From the sequence record NC_019405.1: a stretch of 64,000 nt of DNA; one strand, given 5' to 3'. The notes beneath the pieces were generated by a model, which did not search any database, was not told the origin of the DNA, and was given only the letters and a program-made list of their open reading frames with translations. The translations under genes and the position numbers were made by a program. Positions 6,407 to 52,949 of the stretch are shown one piece after another; position 1 is the stretch's first letter; each line of letters opens with the position of its first letter.

Positions 6407-6434
6407 CCTTTTGTTAACTTCTGCCCGCTAGGGT
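6403..6434 (+). promoter_or_regulatory. CtrA-box early promoter 5
   Basis: GTAA-CCTTTTG-TTAA, 10 nt, CTAGGGT. Confidence 0.75.
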
Positions 6435-6482
6435 CTTCTTGCGGCCGGGCAATCCCGCCCGGCCGCCCAAGGATTGGACCGC

Positions 6483-6755
6483 ATGACCCGCGCTCAAGCC
6501 CTCGCCGAAATGAACGCCCTTCCCGGTATCATCGCCTCTTTTGAGCGCGAGACGGGCGAATATCGCGTGACCCTGCGCTTTGGCCCGCTCCCCATGGGGC
6601 GTGGCGCTCAAGACTGGATGAACAAGCGCCGCGAAGCCGTCGCCAGCTACAGCGACGACAAGGCCGACGCCCTGGCCACCGCCCGCGACATGTCCGCCCG
6701 TTGGGAGGCGATGAACGCCGAAGAGCGTTCGCGCCTCTATCACAACCCCGCCTAA
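6483..6755 (+). CDS. Hypothetical early protein (90 aa)
   Basis: AAGGA RBS. Confidence 0.75.
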   Translation: MTRAQALAEMNALPGIIASFERETGEYRVTLRFGPLPMGRGAQDWMNKRREAVASYSDDKADALATARDMSARWEAMNAEERSRLYHNPA

Positions 6756-8074: not shown

Positions 8075-8653
8075 ATGTCCCGCGCCGTTTCCACCTTCGC
8101 CACCCCTGAAAAGCTCATCGGGGGTTACCTCATGTCGGCGGCCCGTCACGGGGCCATGACCGAAGCCGCCGAAGTCATCGCCACCCTAGAGGCGGCCGGC
8201 TATGTGATCGCCCGCCGCCGCGACGTCTTCACCGATGAGGGCGAGAAGCTGGGCGACCTGTTGGCGGCGCTTTATGACGCCGTCCCGAACTACGCCGTAA
8301 GATCGCAGCGCCTCGCCGACGCCCTCAAGCCGGCGCGAGACTACGTCTATCAGCCCCGGTTCCGGGTCAAGCTGGACGCCGCGCCCGGCGCGCGCCTGAC
8401 CGACTGCGACACGGGCGCAACGGTCTATTTCCAGCCGGGCGACGACGCCGACGCCTTCCGGGCCGAATTCGCCCCGTGGGTTCACGACGCCAATGTGACG
8501 GCCGAAGGCGCGGCCCTGGCCTCGATGATGAACCCGACGGCCGAAGAGTATTTCAGCGCCAGCGGGGAAGATGACGACTTGCCCGGCGCGCTTTCCGCCT
8601 TCGATTCCGCCGGCTCCGGCCAAAGACTGGGCTACGTTCGCCCGCCTCGCTAA
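8075..8653 (+). CDS. Hypothetical early protein (192 aa)
   Basis: AAGGAGG RBS. Confidence 0.8.
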   Translation: MSRAVSTFATPEKLIGGYLMSAARHGAMTEAAEVIATLEAAGYVIARRRDVFTDEGEKLGDLLAALYDAVPNYAVRSQRLADALKPARDYVYQPRFRVKLDAAPGARLTDCDTGATVYFQPGDDADAFRAEFAPWVHDANVTAEGAALASMMNPTAEEYFSASGEDDDLPGALSAFDSAGSGQRLGYVRPPR

Positions 8654-10152: not shown

Positions 10153-10597
10153 CCAGACCCCCGCCCCGGCCCTACCGGTAAGGCCGGGGGTGTGTCCCAT
10201 AATGAGACACCCCCCGCCACCTAGTATCTTTTTTGATTCGGAGGGACCCAAAGGCCCCCTACGTTAACCATTTTTGGCGGCGCCCCCCGGCGCCTACGGA
10301 TCATTTTGAAAAATCGCGTTGACAAAACCAGCAATCAACGTCAAGGATCGTGACGTCGAGCAGCCCCGCCCGACACGGGCGGCCCGCCCCCCATTCGCCG
10401 CCCGACGGCCCCATCCCTGACGTCCACCGGGGGTGGGGCCTTTTCATTTTCCAGCCGGGGACCCAAGGCCCCCTGGCTTTGTAAATCGGATCGCCAAAAG
10501 GTCCCTCCAAAAATTTTCAAAACCAGAAACGACCGGTTGACACTTCCAGACTTGGCTTCTAAGTGTTGCTCGACGACACGCAATCGAGGAGCCCGTC

Positions 10598-19452: not shown

Positions 19453-19468
19453 GTCGTGAATCTTGACA
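19453..19468 (+). promoter_or_regulatory. GANTC/-35 promoter motif before portal
   Basis: GTCGTGAATCTTGACA; inverted copy GATTCACGAC just upstream. Confidence 0.7.
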
Positions 19469-47400: not shown

Positions 47401-47462
47401 ATCTTGACACTCGGTCGAAATACGGTTAACCTGCGCGCTCATCTGGAGTTTCGAGCGCCATC

Positions 47463-47741
47463 ATGGCCGAGCTTGTCCGCATCTATCACCCCGAGACGAA
47501 CGAGCCGTTCGACGTGATCCCGTCGACCGCCGAACGTCTGCGCCTGGGTCAAGGTCTGGACGGTCTGGTGTGGCTCTCGCAGCCCTTCTCCCGCGCCGCT
47601 GCCGAAGAGCCGGCGCCGGAAGCCCCCAAGGGGCGAGGTCGTAAGCGCGTCGCCGCGCCCGTCTCGGACGAAGCCGAAGCCGAAGCCGAAGACGATGGCT
47701 GGCGTGACGCGCCGACCGAGGACGCTTCCGAAGCCGCGTAA
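47463..47741 (+). CDS. Hypothetical protein (92 aa)
   Basis: After GANTC promoter at 47394; GGAG RBS. Confidence 0.8.
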   Translation: MAELVRIYHPETNEPFDVIPSTAERLRLGQGLDGLVWLSQPFSRAAAEEPAPEAPKGRGRKRVAAPVSDEAEAEAEDDGWRDAPTEDASEAA

Positions 47742-47785
47742 GGCGCTTCCCCGTCCACTCTGCTGAAATTCGGTCTCAGTCCCAT

Positions 47786-47861
47786 GTCGGTCTAGCTCAT
47801 GGGGTAGAGCGGCGGTCTCCAAAACCGCGCGTGGCAGGTTCGAGTCCTGCGACCGGCGCCA
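47786..47861 (+). tRNA. tRNA-Trp(CCA)
   Basis: GCGGT-CTCCAAA-ACCGC arm, TTCGA loop, encoded CCA. Confidence 0.9.
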
Positions 47862-47866
47862 TTTCC

Positions 47867-47941
47867 GCGTCCATCGTATATGGGTTATTGCTTCGCGTTG
47901 CCAACGCGACGAACCGGGTTCGAGTCCCGGTGGACGCTCCA
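47867..47941 (+). tRNA. tRNA-Gly(GCC)
   Basis: TCGCG-TTGCCAA-CGCGA. Confidence 0.9.
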
Positions 47942-47947
47942 ATCCAG

Positions 47948-48021
47948 GCGGATATAGCTCAAAGGGAGAGCTACTGCCTTCCAAGCAGAAGATGCGGGTT
48001 CGAGCCCCGCTATCCGCTCCA
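47948..48021 (+). tRNA. tRNA-Gly(TCC)
   Basis: CTGC-CTTCCAA-GCAG, U73. Confidence 0.9.
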
Positions 48022-48080
48022 AAATTTTCTTCCACGACAAGCTTGACAGCCGTCGAGATTTGTGAGAGCCTTCAACCATT

Positions 48081-48143
48081 ATGACGCACCTCCTGACCCG
48101 TTACGAACGCGAGGCCACCGGCCTCGATACCACCACCGCCTAA
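48081..48143 (+). CDS. Candidate leader peptide (MTHLLTRYEREATGLDTTTA)
   Basis: Immediately after TTGACA...TGTGAGAGCC promoter; overlaps alternative hairpins. Confidence 0.45.
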   Translation: MTHLLTRYEREATGLDTTTA

Positions 48144-48177
48144 AAGCGGTTCTGGTAACCGAGGCCTTTTGTCATGT

Positions 48178-48255
48178 GGCCCGGTCGTCTAGCGGTTTGC
48201 AGGATTCGTGACTTTCAATCACGAGAGCGGAGTTCGAGTCTCCGTCGGGCCTCCA
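48178..48255 (+). tRNA. tRNA-Glu(TTC)
   Basis: CGTGA-CTTTCAA-TCACG. Confidence 0.9.
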
Positions 48256-48277
48256 CCCCAAAGCCTCCTCTGAGCTT

Positions 48278-48352
48278 GGTGCGTTCGTATATCGGTCAAT
48301 ACTCCGGATTGTCGATCCGGCAAGAGGGGTTCGATTCCCCTACGCACCGCCA
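48278..48352 (+). tRNA. tRNA-Asp(GTC)
   Basis: CCGGA-TTGTCGA-TCCGG. Confidence 0.9.
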
Positions 48353-48362
48353 GGGCTTTTCC

Positions 48363-48521
48363 ATGCCGCTCCAGTCGGGTTCGAGCGACGCCGTCGTCTC
48401 GCACAACATCGCCAAGCTGATCGACGAGGGCTACTCCAGGGAGCAGGCCGTGGCGATCGCCCTCTCCCAGGCGCGCAAGCCGCGCCGTCCGAAGGTCTCG
48501 CGCGGCTCGCGCCGGCGCTGA
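48363..48521 (+). CDS. Small conserved phage protein (MPL..G.S..V.S.NI..L..EG...[11 protein letters not shown] family, 52 aa)
   Basis: Recognisable small basic phage family. Confidence 0.8.
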
Positions 48522-48591
48522 CCTCGCCTCGCTAATGCAACCCAGGTTCCCGGCCTCATCGTGAGGCCGCCTGCGGTCGCGCGAGGCTTCC

Positions 48592-48816
48592 ATGACCTTT
48601 CTTGATCTTCGTTCGCAGTCGAGCGCCGTGCTCCTGCGCCATGTGTCTTCCCGATCCCCGATGGCGGAAGCGGCTCGCACCGAGTTGCTGACCCGAGGCC
48701 TCGTCCCGCTCCTCACGCGGCACAACGGCTGGCGCCTCGCCCCGAGCGAGCCCTTTCCGCAGCATCTCATCCCGCGCCCCGATCCGCTCGCGAGGTTCAC
48801 GTGGCGGGCGGGATGA
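48592..48816 (+). CDS. Hypothetical protein (74 aa)
   Basis: GAGG RBS. Confidence 0.45.
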   Translation: MTFLDLRSQSSAVLLRHVSSRSPMAEAARTELLTRGLVPLLTRHNGWRLAPSEPFPQHLIPRPDPLARFTWRAG

Positions 48817-48837
48817 GAGCCGTCTACAGACTATAGA

Positions 48838-49335
48838 CTAGAAAGTTTGGGCCTGGAACGCCCCCATAATGATGCCCGGAGAGGCATGTTCGATGAGCCA
48901 GTGGCGCCCCATCCAGCGAAGGAAGGCGGACAATGGCGTAATGTCTTCAGCGCCAGTCTCTTGATCGAAGGGCAAGATCGCGGACAAGCGAATCTCAAGG
49001 ATTCTACCATAGCTGTTGATGTTCGGATCAGGAGCGGTTGGATAGTAGAACAAAGGAGCGTGATAGATCGCCGGAGCCTGTGCTATGAGCTTAATGGGAG
49101 GCACTTGTATCGGCTCCTGATCCGCCATCGGGAAGGCGATCTTGGAGAACGTCAGGAGGAGGGTATCGCCGATCTTTTCACCGGGAGCGATAACACCCCA
49201 GCGATAATCGGCCGGCCCCGGAGGCGTTCCTGTCTCGGAGAAGGGCTCGGGAATGACATTGACGAGGCTCTCCCCATTCGGGTTCACGAACTCCGCCTTG
49301 TCGAAAGTCGCCGCGCGCAGGATTTTGTAGGACAT
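48838..49335 (-). CDS. Hypothetical protein, lower GC, inverted (165 aa)
   Basis: AGGAG RBS on the minus strand; atypical codons. Confidence 0.65.
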   Translation of the reverse strand: MSYKILRAATFDKAEFVNPNGESLVNVIPEPFSETGTPPGPADYRWGVIAPGEKIGDTLLLTFSKIAFPMADQEPIQVPPIKLIAQAPAIYHAPLFYYPTAPDPNINSYGRILEIRLSAILPFDQETGAEDITPLSAFLRWMGRHWLIEHASPGIIMGAFQAQTF

Positions 49336-49539
49336 AAGCTGCTCCTAAGGTTGAGACGTCCCATCGCTATCGGATTCGGTCCTCGGCTGACAGTGAATAT
49401 TTTTCTCACGACGTGCTTGACATTCGTTTGAAGTTGTGAGAGCCTGTCCAACGTCACGGATCACGACACTCCTCGGAGTGCAAAAGCGCGATCCTTCGTT
49501 ATTCCCAGGCCGCCAGCGGGCGGCCGTTCGAGAGCTATC

Positions 49540-49677
49540 ATGTTCGCCTTGTCGCATAACAGCCTGAGCACGAAAGCCGCCTCCCCGGCGTCGCTTTCGC
49601 TTGCCCCGCTGGCGACGGCCACGAAGCCCTCGACCAAGCCGACCACCTCGGCCTCGCACTCGACGGATCACCTCTAG
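49540..49677 (+). CDS. Candidate small Ala/Ser/Thr-rich peptide (45 aa)
   Basis: GAGAG RBS; lies between promoter 49417 and terminator 49744. Confidence 0.4.
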   Translation: MFALSHNSLSTKAASPASLSLAPLATATKPSTKPTTSASHSTDHL

Positions 49678-49742
49678 GGTATCTCGTCTCGGGTGCAGGC
49701 CTTGGAGCCGCACCCGCTACCAACATCCTGTTGACCTAGCGC

Positions 49743-49780
49743 AAGGCGGCTCCCAGCAAGGAGACCGCCTTTTCTTTTTC
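49743..49780 (+). terminator. Rho-independent terminator
   Basis: AAGGCGG-CTCC-CAGCAA-GGAG-A-CCGCCTT plus TTCTTTTT. Confidence 0.75.
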
Positions 49781-49791
49781 GCGTTGATCAT

Positions 49792-49867
49792 CGGGGTGTA
49801 GCTCAGTCGGTAGAGCGCTCGGTTCGGGACCGAGAGGCCGTGGGTTCGAGTCCCGCCACCCAGACCA
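49792..49867 (+). tRNA. tRNA-Pro(CGG)
   Basis: CTCGG-TTCGGGA-CCGAG. Confidence 0.9.
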
Positions 49868-49874
49868 ACGCCAT

Positions 49875-49949
49875 CGGGATGTAGCTCAGCGGTAGAGCGC
49901 GCGGCTGGGGGCCGCGAGGCCGCAGGTTCGAGACCTGCCACCCCGACCA
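49875..49949 (+). tRNA. tRNA-Pro(GGG)
   Basis: CGCGG-CTGGGGG-CCGCG. Confidence 0.9.
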
Positions 49950-49954
49950 ACAAC

Positions 49955-50027
49955 GCTGCTGCGCCTGGATTGGCGCCGGCCCCTTGGTATGGGGAAGTAG
50001 AAGGTTCAATTCCTTCCGGCAGCACCA
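49955..50027 (+). tRNA. tRNA-Thr(GGT), atypical D arm
   Basis: CCCC-TTGGTAT-GGGG; GCTGCTG/CGGCAGC acceptor. Confidence 0.75.
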
Positions 50028-50032
50028 ACAAC

Positions 50033-50102
50033 GCCGATGCCTCTAGGAGGGAACGTCTTTCGTAATGACGTCAGGTGGGTGCGATCCCCACTTTCGGCTC
50101 CA
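50033..50102 (+). tRNA. Degenerate tRNA-Thr(CGT)-like element
   Basis: GCCGA/TCGGC acceptor plus CCA; ACGTC..TTCGTAA..GACGT arm; T loop GTGCGAT. Confidence 0.5.
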
Positions 50103-50139
50103 TCAAGATGATCGAGGAGAGATCGTAGACGAAACAAAT

Positions 50140-50226
50140 GGATGTGTCACCTCAGTGGCGAGAGGACCGGGCTCTTAATCCGGCAGCGAAAGCTCATCGT
50201 GGGTTCGAGTCCCACCACATCCTCCA
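50140..50226 (+). tRNA. tRNA with Lys(CTT) anticodon and long variable arm (87 nt)
   Basis: CCGGG-CTCTTAA-TCCGG; V arm AGC-GAAA-GCT. Confidence 0.85.
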
Positions 50227-50232
50227 AACTAT

Positions 50233-50323
50233 GCACGAGTGACCCGAGCGGCGAAGGGCGTCGACTTTTAATCGACTAGGCGTCCGCGCCTCACCGAGGG
50301 TTCGAGTCCCTCCTCGTGCTCCA
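50233..50323 (+). tRNA. tRNA with Lys(TTT) anticodon and long variable arm (91 nt)
   Basis: GTCGA-CTTTTAA-TCGAC; V arm AGGCG..CGCCT. Confidence 0.85.
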
Positions 50324-50329
50324 GGTTGT

Positions 50330-50413
50330 GCGAAAGTGGCGGAACGGCAGACGCACTGGTCTCAGGTACCAGCGACTTCGGTCATGAGGGTTCGAATCCC
50401 TCCTTTCGTACCA
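50330..50413 (+). tRNA. tRNA-Leu(CAG)
   Basis: CTGGT-CTCAGGT-ACCAG, type II. Confidence 0.9.
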
Positions 50414-50420
50414 ACGACAT

Positions 50421-50505
50421 GCCGGTCTGGCGGAAATGGCAGACGCAGTGGCTTCAAGTCCCACCGCCTTCGGGCGTCCCGGTTCGAGGCCGGGGACCGG
50501 CACCA
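50421..50505 (+). tRNA. tRNA-Leu(CAA)
   Basis: Loop TTCAAGT, type II. Confidence 0.88.
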
Positions 50506-50510
50506 TTTGA

Positions 50511-50599
50511 TGCGAAGTGGCGGAACTTTGGTAGACGCACCGGCATGAGAGGCCGGCGCCCTTCGGGGCGTGAGGGTTCGAGTCCCTTCTTCGCGACCA
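50511..50599 (+). tRNA. tRNA-Leu(GAG)
   Basis: CCGGC-ATGAGAG-GCCGG, type II. Confidence 0.85.
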
Positions 50600-50606
50600 A
50601 TATCAT

Positions 50607-50678
50607 GCCGGACGGCGCAGGCGCGCGGGGGAGGTTGTGTCCCTCCTTGGCTCCGATCGTTACGGAGGTTCGGTTCCA
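50607..50678 (+). tRNA. Degenerate tRNA-His(GTG)-like element
   Basis: GCCGGAC/GTTCGGT acceptor plus CCA; GGAGG-TTGTGTC-CCTCC; CTCCG-ATCGTTA-CGGAG T arm. Confidence 0.55.
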
Positions 50679-50682
50679 TTAC

Positions 50683-50753
50683 GGGGTATGCGCAGGGCGC
50701 AGGCATCCTTTGCAAGGAAGTCGGGGTGGGTTCGAGTCCCACATACTCCACCA
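50683..50753 (+). tRNA. tRNA-Ala(TGC), reduced D arm
   Basis: G3.U70 acceptor; loop TTTGCAA. Confidence 0.75.
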
Positions 50754-50757
50754 ACAT

Positions 50758-50845
50758 GGTAGGTTGGCTGAGAGGCCGAAGGCGCCCGTTTCGAAAACGG
50801 GAGGACCGCAAGGTTCCGTGGGTTCGAATCCCACACCTACCTCCA
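50758..50845 (+). tRNA. tRNA-Ser(CGA)
   Basis: CCCGT-TTCGAAA-ACGGG, type II, U73. Confidence 0.9.
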
Positions 50846-50849
50846 ACAT

Positions 50850-50937
50850 GGATGTATGGCTGAGAGGCCGAAGGCGCCCGCTTGGAAAGCGGGTGAACCG
50901 CAAGGTTCCGTAGGTTCGAATCCTACTGCATCCGCCA
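50850..50937 (+). tRNA. tRNA-Ser(GGA)
   Basis: CCCGC-TTGGAAA-GCGGG, type II. Confidence 0.9.
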
Positions 50938-50941
50938 ACAG

Positions 50942-51028
50942 GGTAGGTGGTTCCGGCCTGGGGCCGGACCCGGTTGCTAACCGGCCGGAGCCGCAAGGCT
51001 TGGGGTTCGATTCCTCCTCCTACCGCCA
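50942..51028 (+). tRNA. tRNA-Ser(GCT), probable 8/4 fold with extended D stem
   Basis: CCGG-TTGCTAA-CCGG; D stem TCCGGC/GCCGGA. Confidence 0.8.
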
Positions 51029-51340
51029 TTTCGGTGTTGACACCCGCAACGCGGCCTGTCATACGTCACGACAGAGCGAACACCCCCCGGCCGGGTTTGT
51101 TGTCATACCGGGTCGTCACGCCCCGTCGGGGCTCTAGTAGCTCTTCGTGTGGAGTTTTCCGCCTCCCTCCCAGACAAGGAGGCGGACCCAACCAACATCG
51201 CGATCTCCCGTGATCGTCGGCGACGGGCGCCGTCAGAGACCTTTGCCTGCGCGGCTCCGCTGCGGCCCTGGTCTCGTCCCGACCAAATTTTTTCGTCGTG
51301 GTGCTTGACACTGCGAAACTGTTCTGCTAGGGTTCACGTC

Positions 51341-51439
51341 ATGAGCAAGACCTATCGTCAATTTGTGCGCCAGATTCAGGTCGTCCGGAATATCCGGGCG
51401 GGCCGCTCGCGCATGGCTGACGAAGGGTTCCGGGACTAG
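51341..51439 (+). CDS. Candidate near-leaderless small protein (32 aa, MSKTYRQFVRQIQVVRNIRAGRSRMADEGFRD)
   Basis: ATG 6 nt after TGCTAGGGT -10 of a TTGACA promoter; terminator 51468-51501. Confidence 0.45.
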   Translation: MSKTYRQFVRQIQVVRNIRAGRSRMADEGFRD

Positions 51440-51540
51440 GTCCCACTCCACGTTCAACCAGTTTCGCGAAGGCCCGCCTGGACACCCAGGCGGGCCTTTT
51501 CGCATTTCAGCTTCAGATCACGGAGATCGCCAACAGACAC

Positions 51541-51625
51541 GGATGCTTAAAGCTGGAGGGCTCCAGCCGGGGACTGTAAATCCCCTCTCTTCGGAGGAGT
51601 GGTTCGATCCCACAAGCATCCACCA
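51541..51625 (+). tRNA. tRNA-Tyr(GTA), 8/4 fold with 6-bp D stem
   Basis: GGATGCTT/AAGCATCC acceptor; GTGG/CCAC T stem; GGGGA-CTGTAAA-TCCCC. Confidence 0.85.
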
Positions 51626-51630
51626 ACCAC

Positions 51631-51706
51631 GGACTCGTAGCTCAGCAGGTAGAGCGCCGGCTTGAAACCCCGGAGGTCGGAGGTTCGATTCCTCCCGTTT
51701 CCACCA
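51631..51706 (+). tRNA. tRNA-Phe(GAA)
   Basis: Loop TTGAAAC; two acceptor mismatches. Confidence 0.8.
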
Positions 51707-51711
51707 ACAAC

Positions 51712-51787
51712 GCCCGATGAGCCAGATGGGAAGGCGCCGCCGTGACATGGCGGGATTGAGAAGGTTCGATTCCTTCATCAGGCACCA
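51712..51787 (+). tRNA. tRNA-Val(GAC)
   Basis: CCGCC-GTGACAT-GGCGG. Confidence 0.8.
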
Positions 51788-51789
51788 AT

Positions 51790-51865
51790 GCAAGTGTAGC
51801 TCAGTCGGTAGAGCAGCGGACCGATAATCCGCCTGTCCCTGGTTCGAGTCCAGGCATTTGCACCA
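51790..51865 (+). tRNA. tRNA-Ile(GAT)
   Basis: GCGGA-CCGATAA-TCCGC (C33). Confidence 0.85.
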
Positions 51866-51872
51866 ATTCTGA

Positions 51873-51947
51873 TGTGGCATAGCTCAGGGGTAGAGCGCGC
51901 GCTTGATAAGCGTGAGGTCGGGGGTTCGAAGCCCTCTGCCACTACCA
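51873..51947 (+). tRNA. tRNA-Ile(GAT), second copy
   Basis: CGCGC-TTGATAA-GCGTG. Confidence 0.85.
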
Positions 51948-51980
51948 GTTTCCAGGCCGGCGGAGATGCGCCGGACCTGA

Positions 51981-52056
51981 TGGCGTTTAGCATAGTGGGA
52001 GTGCAGGGGTGTCACATACCTCGATCGAACTGGTTCGATTCCAGTAACGCCAACCA
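51981..52056 (+). tRNA. tRNA-Val(CAC)
   Basis: GGGGT-GTCACAT-ACCTC. Confidence 0.8.
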
Positions 52057-52061
52057 ATCGT

Positions 52062-52135
52062 TGAGGGTTCGTCTAACGGTAGGACGGCTGGGTCTGGTCC
52101 AGCTAATCTAGGTTCGAGTCCTAGCCCCTCATCCA
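52062..52135 (+). tRNA. tRNA-Gln(CTG)
   Basis: GCTGG-GTCTGGT-CCAGC. Confidence 0.85.
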
Positions 52136-52142
52136 AGCTTGT

Positions 52143-52216
52143 TCTCGGGTGGTCTAATGGTAAGACATCTGGTTTTGGTCCAGAGGATTGGGGTTCGATT
52201 CCTTGGCCGAGAACCA
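52143..52216 (+). tRNA. tRNA-Gln(TTG)
   Basis: TCTGG-TTTTGGT-CCAGA. Confidence 0.85.
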
Positions 52217-52231
52217 ACTATTTGAGTTTAT

Positions 52232-52306
52232 TCCAGTCAATGCACAAGGTGTGCAGCGGCACTGTTAATGCCTGTGAGCCCGGTTCGATTCCGGGGTCTG
52301 GAGCCA
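52232..52306 (+). tRNA. tRNA-Asn(GTT)
   Basis: GGCA-CTGTTAA-TGCC. Confidence 0.85.
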
Positions 52307-52332
52307 ACACGTCGGCCTCGGCCGGCACATGC

Positions 52333-52415
52333 GCCCTGGTAACCGAGGGGGATTACGAATCCCTTAGTCGTAGCAGGAGTTGAAAAGGGTGGTTCGAATC
52401 CACTCCAGGGTGCCA
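52333..52415 (+). tRNA. D-armless tRNA-Arg(ACG)-like element with ~23-nt variable loop
   Basis: GCCCTGG/CCAGGGT acceptor plus GCCA; GGGA-TTACGAA-TCCC; GGTGG-TTCGAAT-CCACT. Confidence 0.65.
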
Positions 52416-52422
52416 AATTCAT

Positions 52423-52505
52423 AGCGCGCAGGCCGAGCAGGATCATCGTCAGGCGTCGCCCTCCGAAGGCGAAGAGGCCCGGTTCGAGTCCGGGGCGCGC
52501 TGCCA
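52423..52505 (+). tRNA. tRNA-Arg(CCG) with enlarged D loop
   Basis: TCGCC-CTCCGAA-GGCGA; AGCGCGC/GCGCGCT acceptor. Confidence 0.75.
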
Positions 52506-52508
52506 TTC

Positions 52509-52586
52509 GCGCGGGTAGCTCAATGGACCCAGAGCAGCCGTCTTCCACACGGAAGGTTGGGGGTTCGAATCCCTCCCCGTGCGCCA
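52509..52586 (+). tRNA. tRNA with Gly(TCC) anticodon, G3.U70 pair and G73
   Basis: GCGCGGG/CCCGTGC acceptor; CCGT-CTTCCAC-ACGG. Confidence 0.75.
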
Positions 52587-52949
52587 AACTTGACGGGCGA
52601 TGCCGAATCGCTCAGCTTCCCGATTGGCTCTCGATGGGCCGCCACTGCACGCCGCCGGCGCCCTCCCGGTACAAGGAGGGGCGCACGTCGGCGACGTTCC
52701 AACCCAGTTCCGGACGATCTTCGAACGCGGCCTGCCGTGGAGGGGTGCTGGAAGGGCCGGGGTTGTGGAAACCGTCGAGCATCTCCTACTCCGGATCGGG
52801 CCTCCTGGGGGCTCCTCCGGTCAACCAGGGCCTGACCCGACCCCGGAGATGCGCCGTCTACGATCACCCAGGACCGTCCTGGCGGTGGAAAGGGTCTGAA
52901 ATTTTTCTGGCGCTGATGTGTTGACACTCCTCGGAGGCTCGGCTAAAAC

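Follow-up and report, generated by a model that had tools for sequence, protein, structure and literature searches.

The Caulobacter phage phiCbK, a large siphovirus whose host is a non-pathogenic freshwater bacterium, carries an array of 31 transfer RNA (tRNA) genes that is best explained, judging from its sequence and that of its relatives, as a working, self-regulated tRNA supply unit. We consider it probable that two of the four gene clusters in this array (clusters 3 and 4) are under ribosome-mediated transcription attenuation and that the oddly built tRNAs in the array perform ordinary cognate decoding; cluster 2 is possibly under the same attenuation. The purpose of phage tRNAs has been debated for 50 years, with two main candidates: (i) codon supply, and (ii) escape from tRNA-cutting defences. 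If the reading proposed here is true, a leader that lists the downstream tRNAs ahead of a terminator shows that a phage meters its tRNA output against translational need, and the question becomes one that can be read from transcript ends and ribosome positions.

The window, which is the whole stretch of DNA analysed, consists of bases 1-64000 of the phiCbK genome (NC_019405.1); over 47500-52800 the two are 100% identical and their coordinates are equal. The 31 genes lie between 47786 and 52586, throughout on the plus strand (as are all features below unless stated otherwise), each has a terminal CCA, and the spacers between them are mostly just 2-7 nucleotides (nt) long. They are organized as four clusters, each preceded by a promoter-like site, and cover 18 amino acids; no Met or Cys tRNA was found in the array or in the rest of the 64-kb window. 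ARAGORN at default settings called 24 tRNAs at 47786-52586, all on the plus strand, and none elsewhere in the window. The gathering threshold of Rfam family RF00005 was passed by 21 of the 31 genes; those below it were Ala (23 bits, cut-off 29), Leu(CAA), Asn, both Thr, His, Tyr, two Arg, and Ser(GCU). A relaxed ARAGORN search contributed Thr(GGU), His, Ser(GCU), Arg(ACG), and Arg(CCG), and manual cloverleaf folding, with support from relatives, added Tyr (51541-51625) and Thr(CGU) (50033-50102). We rejected two ARAGORN models: an Ile(AAU) at 52232-52306, where the gene is Asn(GUU), and a 77-nt His, which we replaced by a 72-nt gene at offset coordinates (50607-50678). The GenBank annotation of the array has 22 tRNAs. 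U at the discriminator position (U73) occurs in 9 of the 31 genes and is expected only in the two Gly. An earlier note on this DNA had described about 31 CCA-ending tRNA-like genes, an unusual frequency of U73, and the absence of Met and Cys tRNAs, and our count from ARAGORN, Rfam, manual folds, and relatives agrees with it on each point. At permissive E-values Rfam returned only tRNA-related or chance matches and no transfer-messenger RNA, and Pfam searches with seven neighbouring open reading frames (ORFs) gave no match except PhoH, downstream.

Clusters 2, 3, and 4 share one order of elements: a promoter-like site, a short leader ORF (L2, L3, and L4, respectively), a GC-rich hairpin with a U tract, and then the tRNAs. 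The promoter-like sites come from one family, with 11 members in the window and none on the minus strand; its core is CTTGACA, preceded in most members by the upstream motif GTCGTGAA (positions 19462, 22405, 25486, 30474, 33221, 47403, 48042, 49416, 51304, 53634, and 56764). By their sequence, these are probably host-polymerase promoters for this part of the genome. We located these Caulobacter-type promoters by motif after a scan of the region for sigma-70 consensus promoters and for terminators had returned one promoter-like and two terminator-like matches, no more than expected from shuffled sequence. The TTGACA box of cluster 4 (51305-51310) is invariant in seven phages, and the ATG of L4 (51341-51439, 32 amino acids, unannotated) lies only 36 nt past this -35 box; we therefore predict a leaderless messenger RNA (mRNA). 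In cluster 2 (TTGACA box at 48043-48048), the ATG of L2 (48081-48143, 20 amino acids, terminating within the terminator hairpin) follows TTGACA by 38 nt, and its 5' untranslated region is predicted to be absent or very short. The cluster 3 box is at 49417-49422, and L3 (49540-49677, 45 amino acids) is gp335, annotated as a protein and kept in the relatives Colossus and Gurke. In Caulobacter, leaderless mRNAs are translated no less efficiently than led ones, and an ilv leader attenuator is in use (PMC4117421).

The leader codons are those of the tRNAs that follow. In L3, 41 of 44 residues are among A, H, K, L, P, S, and T, the cluster 3 set, versus 43% expected from phage proteins (p = 3e-12), and its codons cover all 14 cluster 3 anticodons, those of the odd Thr, His, Ala, and Ser tRNAs included. 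Codons 5-19 of L4 form the run YRQFVRQIQVVRNIR, which consists exclusively of cluster 4 amino acids, and the codons of this leader cover all 11 cluster 4 anticodons, partly via rare A/T-ending codons; minor tRNAs are reached in the leaders through rare codons. Neither leader is enriched for the amino-acid set of the other cluster. Such anticodon coverage was seen in none of about 8000 real ORF windows and in none of 200,000 random draws.

Leader content follows tRNA content across phage genera. In six phages, drawn from several genera, the L4 run comprises 14-15 residues belonging to the cluster 4 set, in varying order. Peptide order is shuffled among these phages while the composition and the RNA-pairing segment are retained, which argues that selection acts on the codons rather than on the peptide. 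L2 is kept in Rogue, BL57, Colossus, and Gurke, with its Glu-x-Glu and Asp codons retained. Contig L133 (IMG/VR), from another phage lineage, has a divided array with a separate leader for each part (6434-6529, 8093-8179, and 10383-10487), the ATG lying 36 nt after TTGACA. A T/K/P/M-rich leader heads a Pro-Pro-Pro-Met-Thr-Thr-Thr-Lys sub-cluster, a leader with LLLL heads five Leu genes, and an H/A/S-rich leader heads His-Ala-Ala-Ala-Ser x4.

For each of L4, L2, and L3 we found a terminator together with an alternative pairing that uses its 5' arm, the statistics being weaker for L2 and L3 than for L4. RNAalifold on seven phages gave, for L4, a hairpin (51379-51405) between region 1, at the end of the codon run (51379-51388), and region 2, the next 12 nt (51393-51405), plus an intrinsic terminator (51469-51505) formed by region 3 (51469-51481), region 4 (51486-51498), and a T tail. 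Region 2 is a near-repeat of region 4 and is therefore able to pair with region 3. In six phages the 2:3 duplex reaches -22 to -27 kcal/mol; RB23 did not satisfy the strict requirement for a perfect stem. Folding of a transcript that ends after region 3 yields the 2:3 antiterminator; a ribosome mask at codons 5-14 leaves this pairing in place, and one at codon 17 or beyond abolishes it. Regions 2, 3, and 4 vary in step in loci L109 and L116 (Ala-Gly-Arg to Thr-Gly-Leu) and in Colossus. In the L2 attenuator (48109-48170), positions 48109-48117 could form a duplex (z = -4.2 against shuffles) with the terminator 5' arm (48120-48126); the 3' arm (48160-48166) is followed by a T run, and GenBank annotates a terminator here. 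The first leader of L133 (Pro-Met-Thr-Lys) has an antiterminator pairing of its own (z = -4.6). The L3 attenuator (49691-49780) contains a hairpin at 49691-49715, of which the strand 49704-49711 can pair with 49746-49753; the terminator arms (49743-49753 and 49760-49771) precede a T run.

From these elements we infer a scheme of ribosome stalling and termination. A host-type promoter would start a short leader ORF, which for L4 and L2 would begin at or within a few nt of the transcript 5' end and whose codons would be those decoded by the downstream tRNAs. With fast translation, the ribosome would cover the antiterminator segment, or another segment would sequester it, so that the terminator forms and no tRNAs are made. 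Stalling caused by scarce or uncharged tRNAs would let the antiterminator form, and the cluster would be transcribed. The net outcome would be a demand-driven, self-limiting output of tRNAs. The earlier note had proposed leader-controlled promoters; leader control is strongly supported by the sequence comparisons, but it would act after the promoter, as transcription attenuation.

Alternatively, the short ORFs could be ordinary small genes or chance frames, and the hairpins either plain terminators belonging to the units upstream or processing signals, with the tRNAs made by constitutive read-through. The annotation of gp335 as a protein is in line with this, as are the lack of enrichment in L2 and the negative outcome of a generic leader scan in other phages (both given below). 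However, small genes or chance frames would not be expected to give a codon match beyond that of 200,000 random draws, a peptide whose order shuffles while its composition and pairing segment stay, three-way covariation among L4 regions 2, 3, and 4, or the sub-cluster-specific leaders of L133, and a terminator between a promoter and its sole cargo is hard to explain without regulation. We regard this alternative as improbable and retain attenuation as the preferred reading for clusters 3 and 4.

Several points weigh against that reading. L2 shows no statistical enrichment for Glu or Asp, and a codon-enriched short ORF between promoter and cargo is found for L3 and L4 but not for L2. The L3 antiterminator duplex has a z of about -2 against shuffles, a weaker model than that of L4, and the multi-hairpin logic that we suggest for L3 is our own reading of its possible folds. 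A ribosome stalled at the last three to four codons of the L4 run would cover region 2, which should favour termination, so that not every sampled codon would be an inducer in a simple steric model. In a crude scan for matched leaders before 160 other IMG/VR tRNA clusters, 2 had z > 3 (reverse-strand control, 0), and the top matches were mostly phiCbK relatives; on this crude test, then, phage tRNA arrays do not generally have the device. Finally, two of the odd tRNAs, Thr(CGU) with G55 in its T loop and the last tRNA with its mutated anticodon, may be impaired, as far as their sequences tell.

About 12 genes, where the earlier note had counted about 10, depart from the canonical tRNA form, which we define as acceptor and T stems of 7 and 5 base pairs (bp; 7/5), a D hairpin with a loop of 8-11 nt, and, for class I amino acids, a variable region of 4-5 nt. 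These are the two Lys, Tyr, Ser(GCU), Arg(ACG), Arg(CCG), His, Ala, Asn, and the two Thr; with them we count an Arg-type gene whose anticodon is UCC. The codons of each odd tRNA are represented in its leader ORF, as expected for working decoders. We consider the odd shapes most likely to be lineage-specific functional architectures under selection, carrying the amino acid that the anticodon would imply. The long-armed Lys pair, the 8/4 Tyr and Ser, one Arg without a D arm and another with an enlarged one, and the reduced D arms of Ala and Thr had all been described in the earlier note and stand as described, whereas its degenerate His is a well-formed 72-nt tRNA.

A compact D arm (stem 4-6 bp, loop 3-6 nt, GG kept) is shared by His, Ala, both Thr, Asn, Tyr, and Ser(GCU). 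Ala(UGC) (50683-50753, 71 nt, called by ARAGORN) has a D stem of 4 bp and a loop of 3 nt, with G3.U70 and A73; in Colossus, a copy 93% identical to it adjoins a canonical Ala. Thr(GGU) (49955-50027; stem 4 bp, loop 6 nt), unannotated in GenBank, is called by default ARAGORN in the Rogue group, and its pairing is retained in 74 of 78 cells (pairs scored across relatives). Thr(CGU) (50033-50102), likewise unannotated and folded by hand, has an anticodon stem closed by a U.U pair and a G at T-loop position 55; nine of its pairs show compensatory change across relatives, and L3 contains four ACG codons. We rate this Thr(CGU)-like gene as the least secure of the 31. His(GUG) (50607-50678), unannotated and with an unusual T loop, has G1:U72, no G-1, and U73. 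G1:U72 without G-1 is the identity rule of the alpha-proteobacterial HisRS (PMC7590224), and the sequence of the phiCbK gene fits this rule, though its discriminator is U instead of A. Asn(GUU) (52232-52306) has a D stem of 5 bp and a loop of 5 nt. Its syntenic slot, called Asn(GUU) in Colossus, PW, Gurke, RB23, and L109, holds three architectures: the compact-D gene of 75 nt in phiCbK, a canonical gene in RB23 and L109, and, in Colossus, PW, and Gurke, a gene of 84-89 nt whose long variable arm is paired (L014:1697-1785, L015:1694-1782, and L016:1320-1403).

Tyr(GUA) (51541-51625) and Ser(GCU) (50942-51028), both unannotated, have 8-bp acceptor stems and 4-bp T stems (8/4). All of these pairs are standard in Tyr, and one is U.U in Ser(GCU), which was found by relaxed ARAGORN and manual folding. 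The Gurke gene in the Tyr slot is drawn as 8/4 by ARAGORN at -ps90. Both genes have D stems of 6 bp, loops of 4-5 nt (4 nt in Tyr), and paired variable arms. Their anticodons are cognate (Tyr has A73), unlike those of a typical allo-tRNA, which combines Ser identity with a non-Ser anticodon. Ser(GCU) was also considered as tRNA-Sec and rejected, because the model gives it 44 bits against a cut-off of 47 and its anticodon reads GCU instead of UCA.

The two unannotated Arg genes were found by relaxed ARAGORN and are supported by covariation. Arg(CCG) (52423-52505) has a D stem of 3 bp and a D loop of 17 nt. Arg(ACG) (52333-52415) has no D hairpin; instead, nt 11-13 form a 3-bp helix with the bases directly 3' of the anticodon arm. 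This extra helix covaries, being A-U in phiCbK and G-C elsewhere. About 17 conserved nt, GG among them, come next, and we read this stretch, on the modelled fold, as a D loop that may have been relocated rather than lost. The scaffold occurs in seven lineages with the anticodons ACG, UCG, CCG, and UCU, all Arg, which argues for ordinary Arg charging and decoding rather than use as a decoy.

We compared the odd genes with a close set of phages (Rogue, BL10, and BL57, about 85-89% identical to the array overall) and a distant set (Colossus, PW, the Brevundimonas phage Gurke, RB23, and IMG/VR contigs). Asn is 100% identical in all three close relatives, Arg(ACG) is 100% identical to Rogue and BL10 and 90% to BL57, and Arg(CCG), Tyr, and Ala are 99-100%, 98-100%, and 96-100% identical to the three. 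The 3-26 nt spacers that flank the odd genes differ in these phages, and some ordinary array tRNAs have been swapped for others (identity 56-67%). Pairing is preserved in the relatives in 68 of 68 cells for Arg(ACG) (17 pairs, 7 compensatory) and in 60 of 60 for Arg(CCG) (20 pairs, 8 compensatory; Colossus, PW, and Gurke). The corresponding figures are 134 of 144 for Lys(CUU) (24 pairs, 12 compensatory, the V stem of the extra arm included), 114 of 138 for Tyr (26 pairs, 15 compensatory), and 116 of 126 for His (21 pairs, 15 compensatory; Rogue, BL57, Colossus, Gurke, and L109). Compensatory changes were seen in every helix tested, and Lys(CUU) is kept in Colossus, Gurke, L109, and L133.

These data bear on whether the odd genes could be pseudogenes decaying within the array. 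They are overlooked or flagged by standard tools, the T loop of Thr(CGU) is non-standard, and in the last tRNA the anticodon has changed and a G.A pair is present, all as decay would predict. Against this, identity is 98-100% across genera while the flanks diverge, the pairing is complete in the two Arg genes, 7-15 pairs per gene have changed in a compensatory manner, and the codons of the odd genes are present in the leaders. Conservation confined to the genes, together with compensatory pairing, indicates that they are not decaying. We therefore find decay scarcely credible as a general account; by these comparisons it is largely refuted for 10 of the 12 odd genes, though perhaps not for Thr(CGU) and the last tRNA. 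The earlier note had named unconserved pseudogenes as what would undo its proposal, and the identity and compensatory pairs speak against that outcome.

The last tRNA (52509-52586), which has an Arg-type body with the anticodon UCC (Gly), G3.U70, and G73, was placed by comparison with six relatives. Where the earlier note saw a G3.U70 tRNA-Gly, the pair is present, but the gene is Arg(UCU) in six of six relatives and position 3:70 is G-C in three of the six. Hence, we rejected G3.U70 as a conserved Ala mark, since it is polymorphic. UCC occurs only in phiCbK, Ccr32, Ccr34, and S2L, and may be, on this distribution, a change specific to the phiCbK lineage. The anticodon stem has a G.A pair in phiCbK and G.U in most relatives.

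A further explanation is that the array recodes: Ser or Leu would be loaded onto the class-II-shaped Lys tRNAs, Ala onto the G3.U70 tRNA, and Arg onto the Arg-bodied UCC tRNA, for deliberate mistranslation of phage or host proteins. The acceptor stem and T arm of Lys(CUU) are similar to those of the phage's own Ser tRNAs, the last tRNA joins an Arg-type body to a Gly anticodon, and allo-tRNAs with Ser or Ala identity and non-cognate anticodons are functional in E. coli, according to Mukai et al. (PMC5389517). However, AAG makes up 93% of the phage's Lys codons, so Lys-to-Ser decoding would affect every phage protein. The extra arm of both Lys tRNAs is paired and has 4 unpaired bases on its 3' side versus 1 in the phage Ser tRNAs, and their discriminator is U, not G. 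The relatives argue against the remaining two cases as well, with G-C at 3:70 in half of those compared and the UCC anticodon restricted to phiCbK and three near-identical isolates. We consider mis-acylation, and deliberate mistranslation as its purpose, very improbable. Cognate charging remains the reading that we prefer; the host LysRS is a class I enzyme.

The two long-armed Lys genes, both with U73 and both found by ARAGORN and Rfam, are Lys(CUU) (50140-50226, 87 nt) and Lys(UUU) (50233-50323, 91 nt; variable stem 5 bp, D stem 3 bp), the latter 96-98% identical to its relatives. We searched IMG/VR for such genes with a spacing-restricted pattern and both Lys anticodons (loci L018-L251). 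Among the matches listed, default ARAGORN gives a Lys tRNA of 82-94 nt in 180 of 234 loci from viral contigs, with at least 175 distinct sequences, of which 121 have discriminator A and 52 have U. In cellular genomes they are rarer, found in 21 of 120 loci among the matches listed (including L255, L266, L277, and L332) and mostly within large tRNA arrays. Cellular examples include arrays in Terracidiphilus metagenome-assembled genomes and a Colwellia contig with tandem Lys genes of 76 and 88 nt.

This breadth in viral contigs could also mean that the odd shapes serve mainly to evade tRNA-cutting nucleases, with the attenuators acting as an alarm that turns on the spare tRNAs upon cleavage of host ones. 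Nuclease targeting is proven for Lys and Tyr tRNAs, and T5 tRNAs rescue infection (PMC11464382, PMC11555353); the AriB cut site in E. coli tRNA-Lys, 40/41, adjoins the extra-arm position, and a stall-induced attenuator would react to tRNA loss. On the other side, Ala, Thr, His, Asn, Ser, and Arg tRNAs are also odd, without known targeting in this host, long-arm Lys is present in bacterial tRNA arrays too, and the attenuators would answer plain demand or starvation equally. Nuclease evasion as the main purpose is plausible by analogy with T5, though we consider it unlikely, and it would be compatible with the attenuator as a depletion sensor. Nuclease resistance, decoys, and mis-acylation, which the earlier note had put forward, drew no support from our comparisons, which covered no tRNA-cleaving system. 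We infer charging identity and any link to host defence, and offer tentatively, at slightly less than an even chance, a broader feedback circuit in which ribosome stalling at the codons of its own tRNAs would switch on each cluster. The phage would then sense host tRNA depletion (by demand, starvation, or an anticodon nuclease) and answer with rebuilt replacement tRNAs, among them a tRNA-Arg of undescribed architecture, its D loop relocated, and the class-II-shaped tRNA-Lys that is widespread.

The remaining genes of the array are of standard type. Cluster 1 is preceded by a -35 box of the 11-site motif family (TTGACA, 47404-47409), which would also serve gp079, an annotated coding sequence (47463-47741, 92 amino acids) immediately upstream of the tRNAs. 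No terminator separates gp079 from tRNA-Trp; the ORF is kept in relatives, contig L133 included, and has no Pfam match. The cluster contains Trp(CCA) (47786-47861), Gly(GCC) (47867-47941), and Gly(UCC) (47948-48021), each called by ARAGORN and by Rfam (53, 50, and 68 bits, respectively). Cluster 2 contains Glu(UUC) (48178-48255, U73) and Asp(GUC) (48278-48352), both called by ARAGORN and Rfam. Between clusters 2 and 3 lies gp336, a 165-amino-acid ORF on the minus strand (48838-49335) without a Pfam match. It is missing from Ccr5 and Swift, and in Karma a minus-strand ORF (L013:4487-4975), likened to gp336 by size alone, lies between clusters 3 and 4; gp336 may be a mobile insert.

The other cluster 3 genes, called by ARAGORN and Rfam except for Leu(CAA), which was called by ARAGORN, are Pro(CGG) (49792-49867), Pro(GGG) (49875-49949), Leu(CAG) (50330-50413), Leu(CAA) (50421-50505), Leu(GAG) (50511-50599), Ser(CGA) (50758-50845, U73), and Ser(GGA) (50850-50937). 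Downstream, an extra TTGACA box lies at 51037; about 230 nt without a tRNA or convincing ORF come next, and then a terminator-like hairpin with a T run (51269-51291). Between the cluster 3 genes and the promoter of L4 there may thus be a small RNA unit (51037-51291). In cluster 4, ARAGORN and Rfam both called Phe(GAA) (51631-51706), Val(GAC) (51712-51787), two copies of Ile(GAU) (51790-51865 and 51873-51947), Val(CAC) (51981-52056), Gln(CUG) (52062-52135, U73), and Gln(UUG) (52143-52216). Acceptor-stem mismatches occur among these standard tRNAs: two in Phe (C4.U69 and U5.U68), one in Pro(CGG) (G2.A71), and one in Val(GAC) (C4.A69). The Phe gene is nonetheless 100% identical in Rogue and BL57. 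The 33-nt spacer between the second Ile(GAU) and Val(CAC) (51948-51980) contains a GC-rich hairpin, is identical at 27 to 32 of 33 positions in Rogue-group phages and BL57, and may be a processing signal.

We found no description of tRNA-matched attenuation in the literature searched, whose coverage was incomplete, nor, within the same limits, of the seven to nine unannotated genes, the Arg scaffold, or the breadth of long-arm Lys. The leader logic could serve as an annotation tool: His, Ala, Thr, Tyr, Asn, and Arg tRNAs that had been missed or flagged by standard tools and by the published phiCbK annotation have their codons listed in the leaders. The odd architectures (long-arm Lys and Asn, 8/4 Tyr, and Arg without a D hairpin) widen the range of shapes that bacterial translation appears to accept, and are relevant to tRNA biology and to orthogonal tRNA work.

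The array itself is already known. Gill et al. (2012, PMC3556154) described 26 tRNAs in phiCbK and proposed that they serve codons that the phage commonly uses; leaders and attenuators are unmentioned there. They reported Thr and Tyr tRNAs in none of these phages, Asn and His only in Colossus, and phiCbK without Arg, whereas we find Thr, Tyr, Asn, His, and Arg tRNAs all in phiCbK. Also known are the 8/4 tRNA-Ser and tRNA-His of alpha-proteobacterial phage tRNA clusters, reported by Mukai et al. (2017, PMC5389517). The phiCbK Tyr and Ser genes share with the tRNAs described there the 8-bp acceptor and 4-bp T stems, a D stem that is long but has a very small loop, and an extended variable arm. 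They differ in that the 8/4 genes here are Ser(GCU) and Tyr(GUA), an 8/4 Tyr being unmentioned in the text of that paper, and in that the phiCbK His is 7/5, unlike the 8/4 His. Most allo-tRNAs have an anticodon off their expected identity, and those of the phiCbK 8/4 tRNAs match.

The Arg scaffold resembles mitochondrial tRNAs that lack a D arm, as the D hairpin is missing and the helix under the anticodon arm is extended; it differs in having a full T arm and a GG-containing stretch after the anticodon arm, and in occurring in phages of bacteria. Among known anti-defence tRNAs, T5 tRNA-Lys counters PARIS (PMC11464382) and T5 tRNA-Tyr counters the retron PtuAB (PMC11555353), and anticodon-loop variants of mycobacteriophages counter tRNA-cutting defence (PMC10264068). 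Like these, phiCbK has Lys and Tyr isoacceptors structurally unlike standard tRNAs; however, the known cases change a few bases of the anticodon stem-loop, while in the predicted folds of phiCbK entire arms are rebuilt.

The closest comparison for the leaders is with the attenuators of amino-acid operons (trp, his, thr, and ilv, including the Caulobacter ilv leader; PMC4117421). These have the same parts as phiCbK: a promoter, a short ORF containing many regulatory codons, a set of hairpins (1:2, 2:3, and 3:4) that exclude one another, and an intrinsic terminator ahead of the cargo. There, slow translation of the regulatory codons leads to read-through, and the same logic is proposed for phiCbK. 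Leader-peptide attenuation is classical; the tRNA cargo and the multi-codon design are, as far as the literature searched shows, new. In the classical systems the cargo is biosynthetic enzymes and the leader holds a run of one or two codons, whereas in the phage-encoded system of phiCbK the cargo is tRNAs and the leaders sample 11-14 anticodons and seven amino acids. Unlike the classical attenuators, L4 and possibly L2 appear to be leaderless mRNAs.

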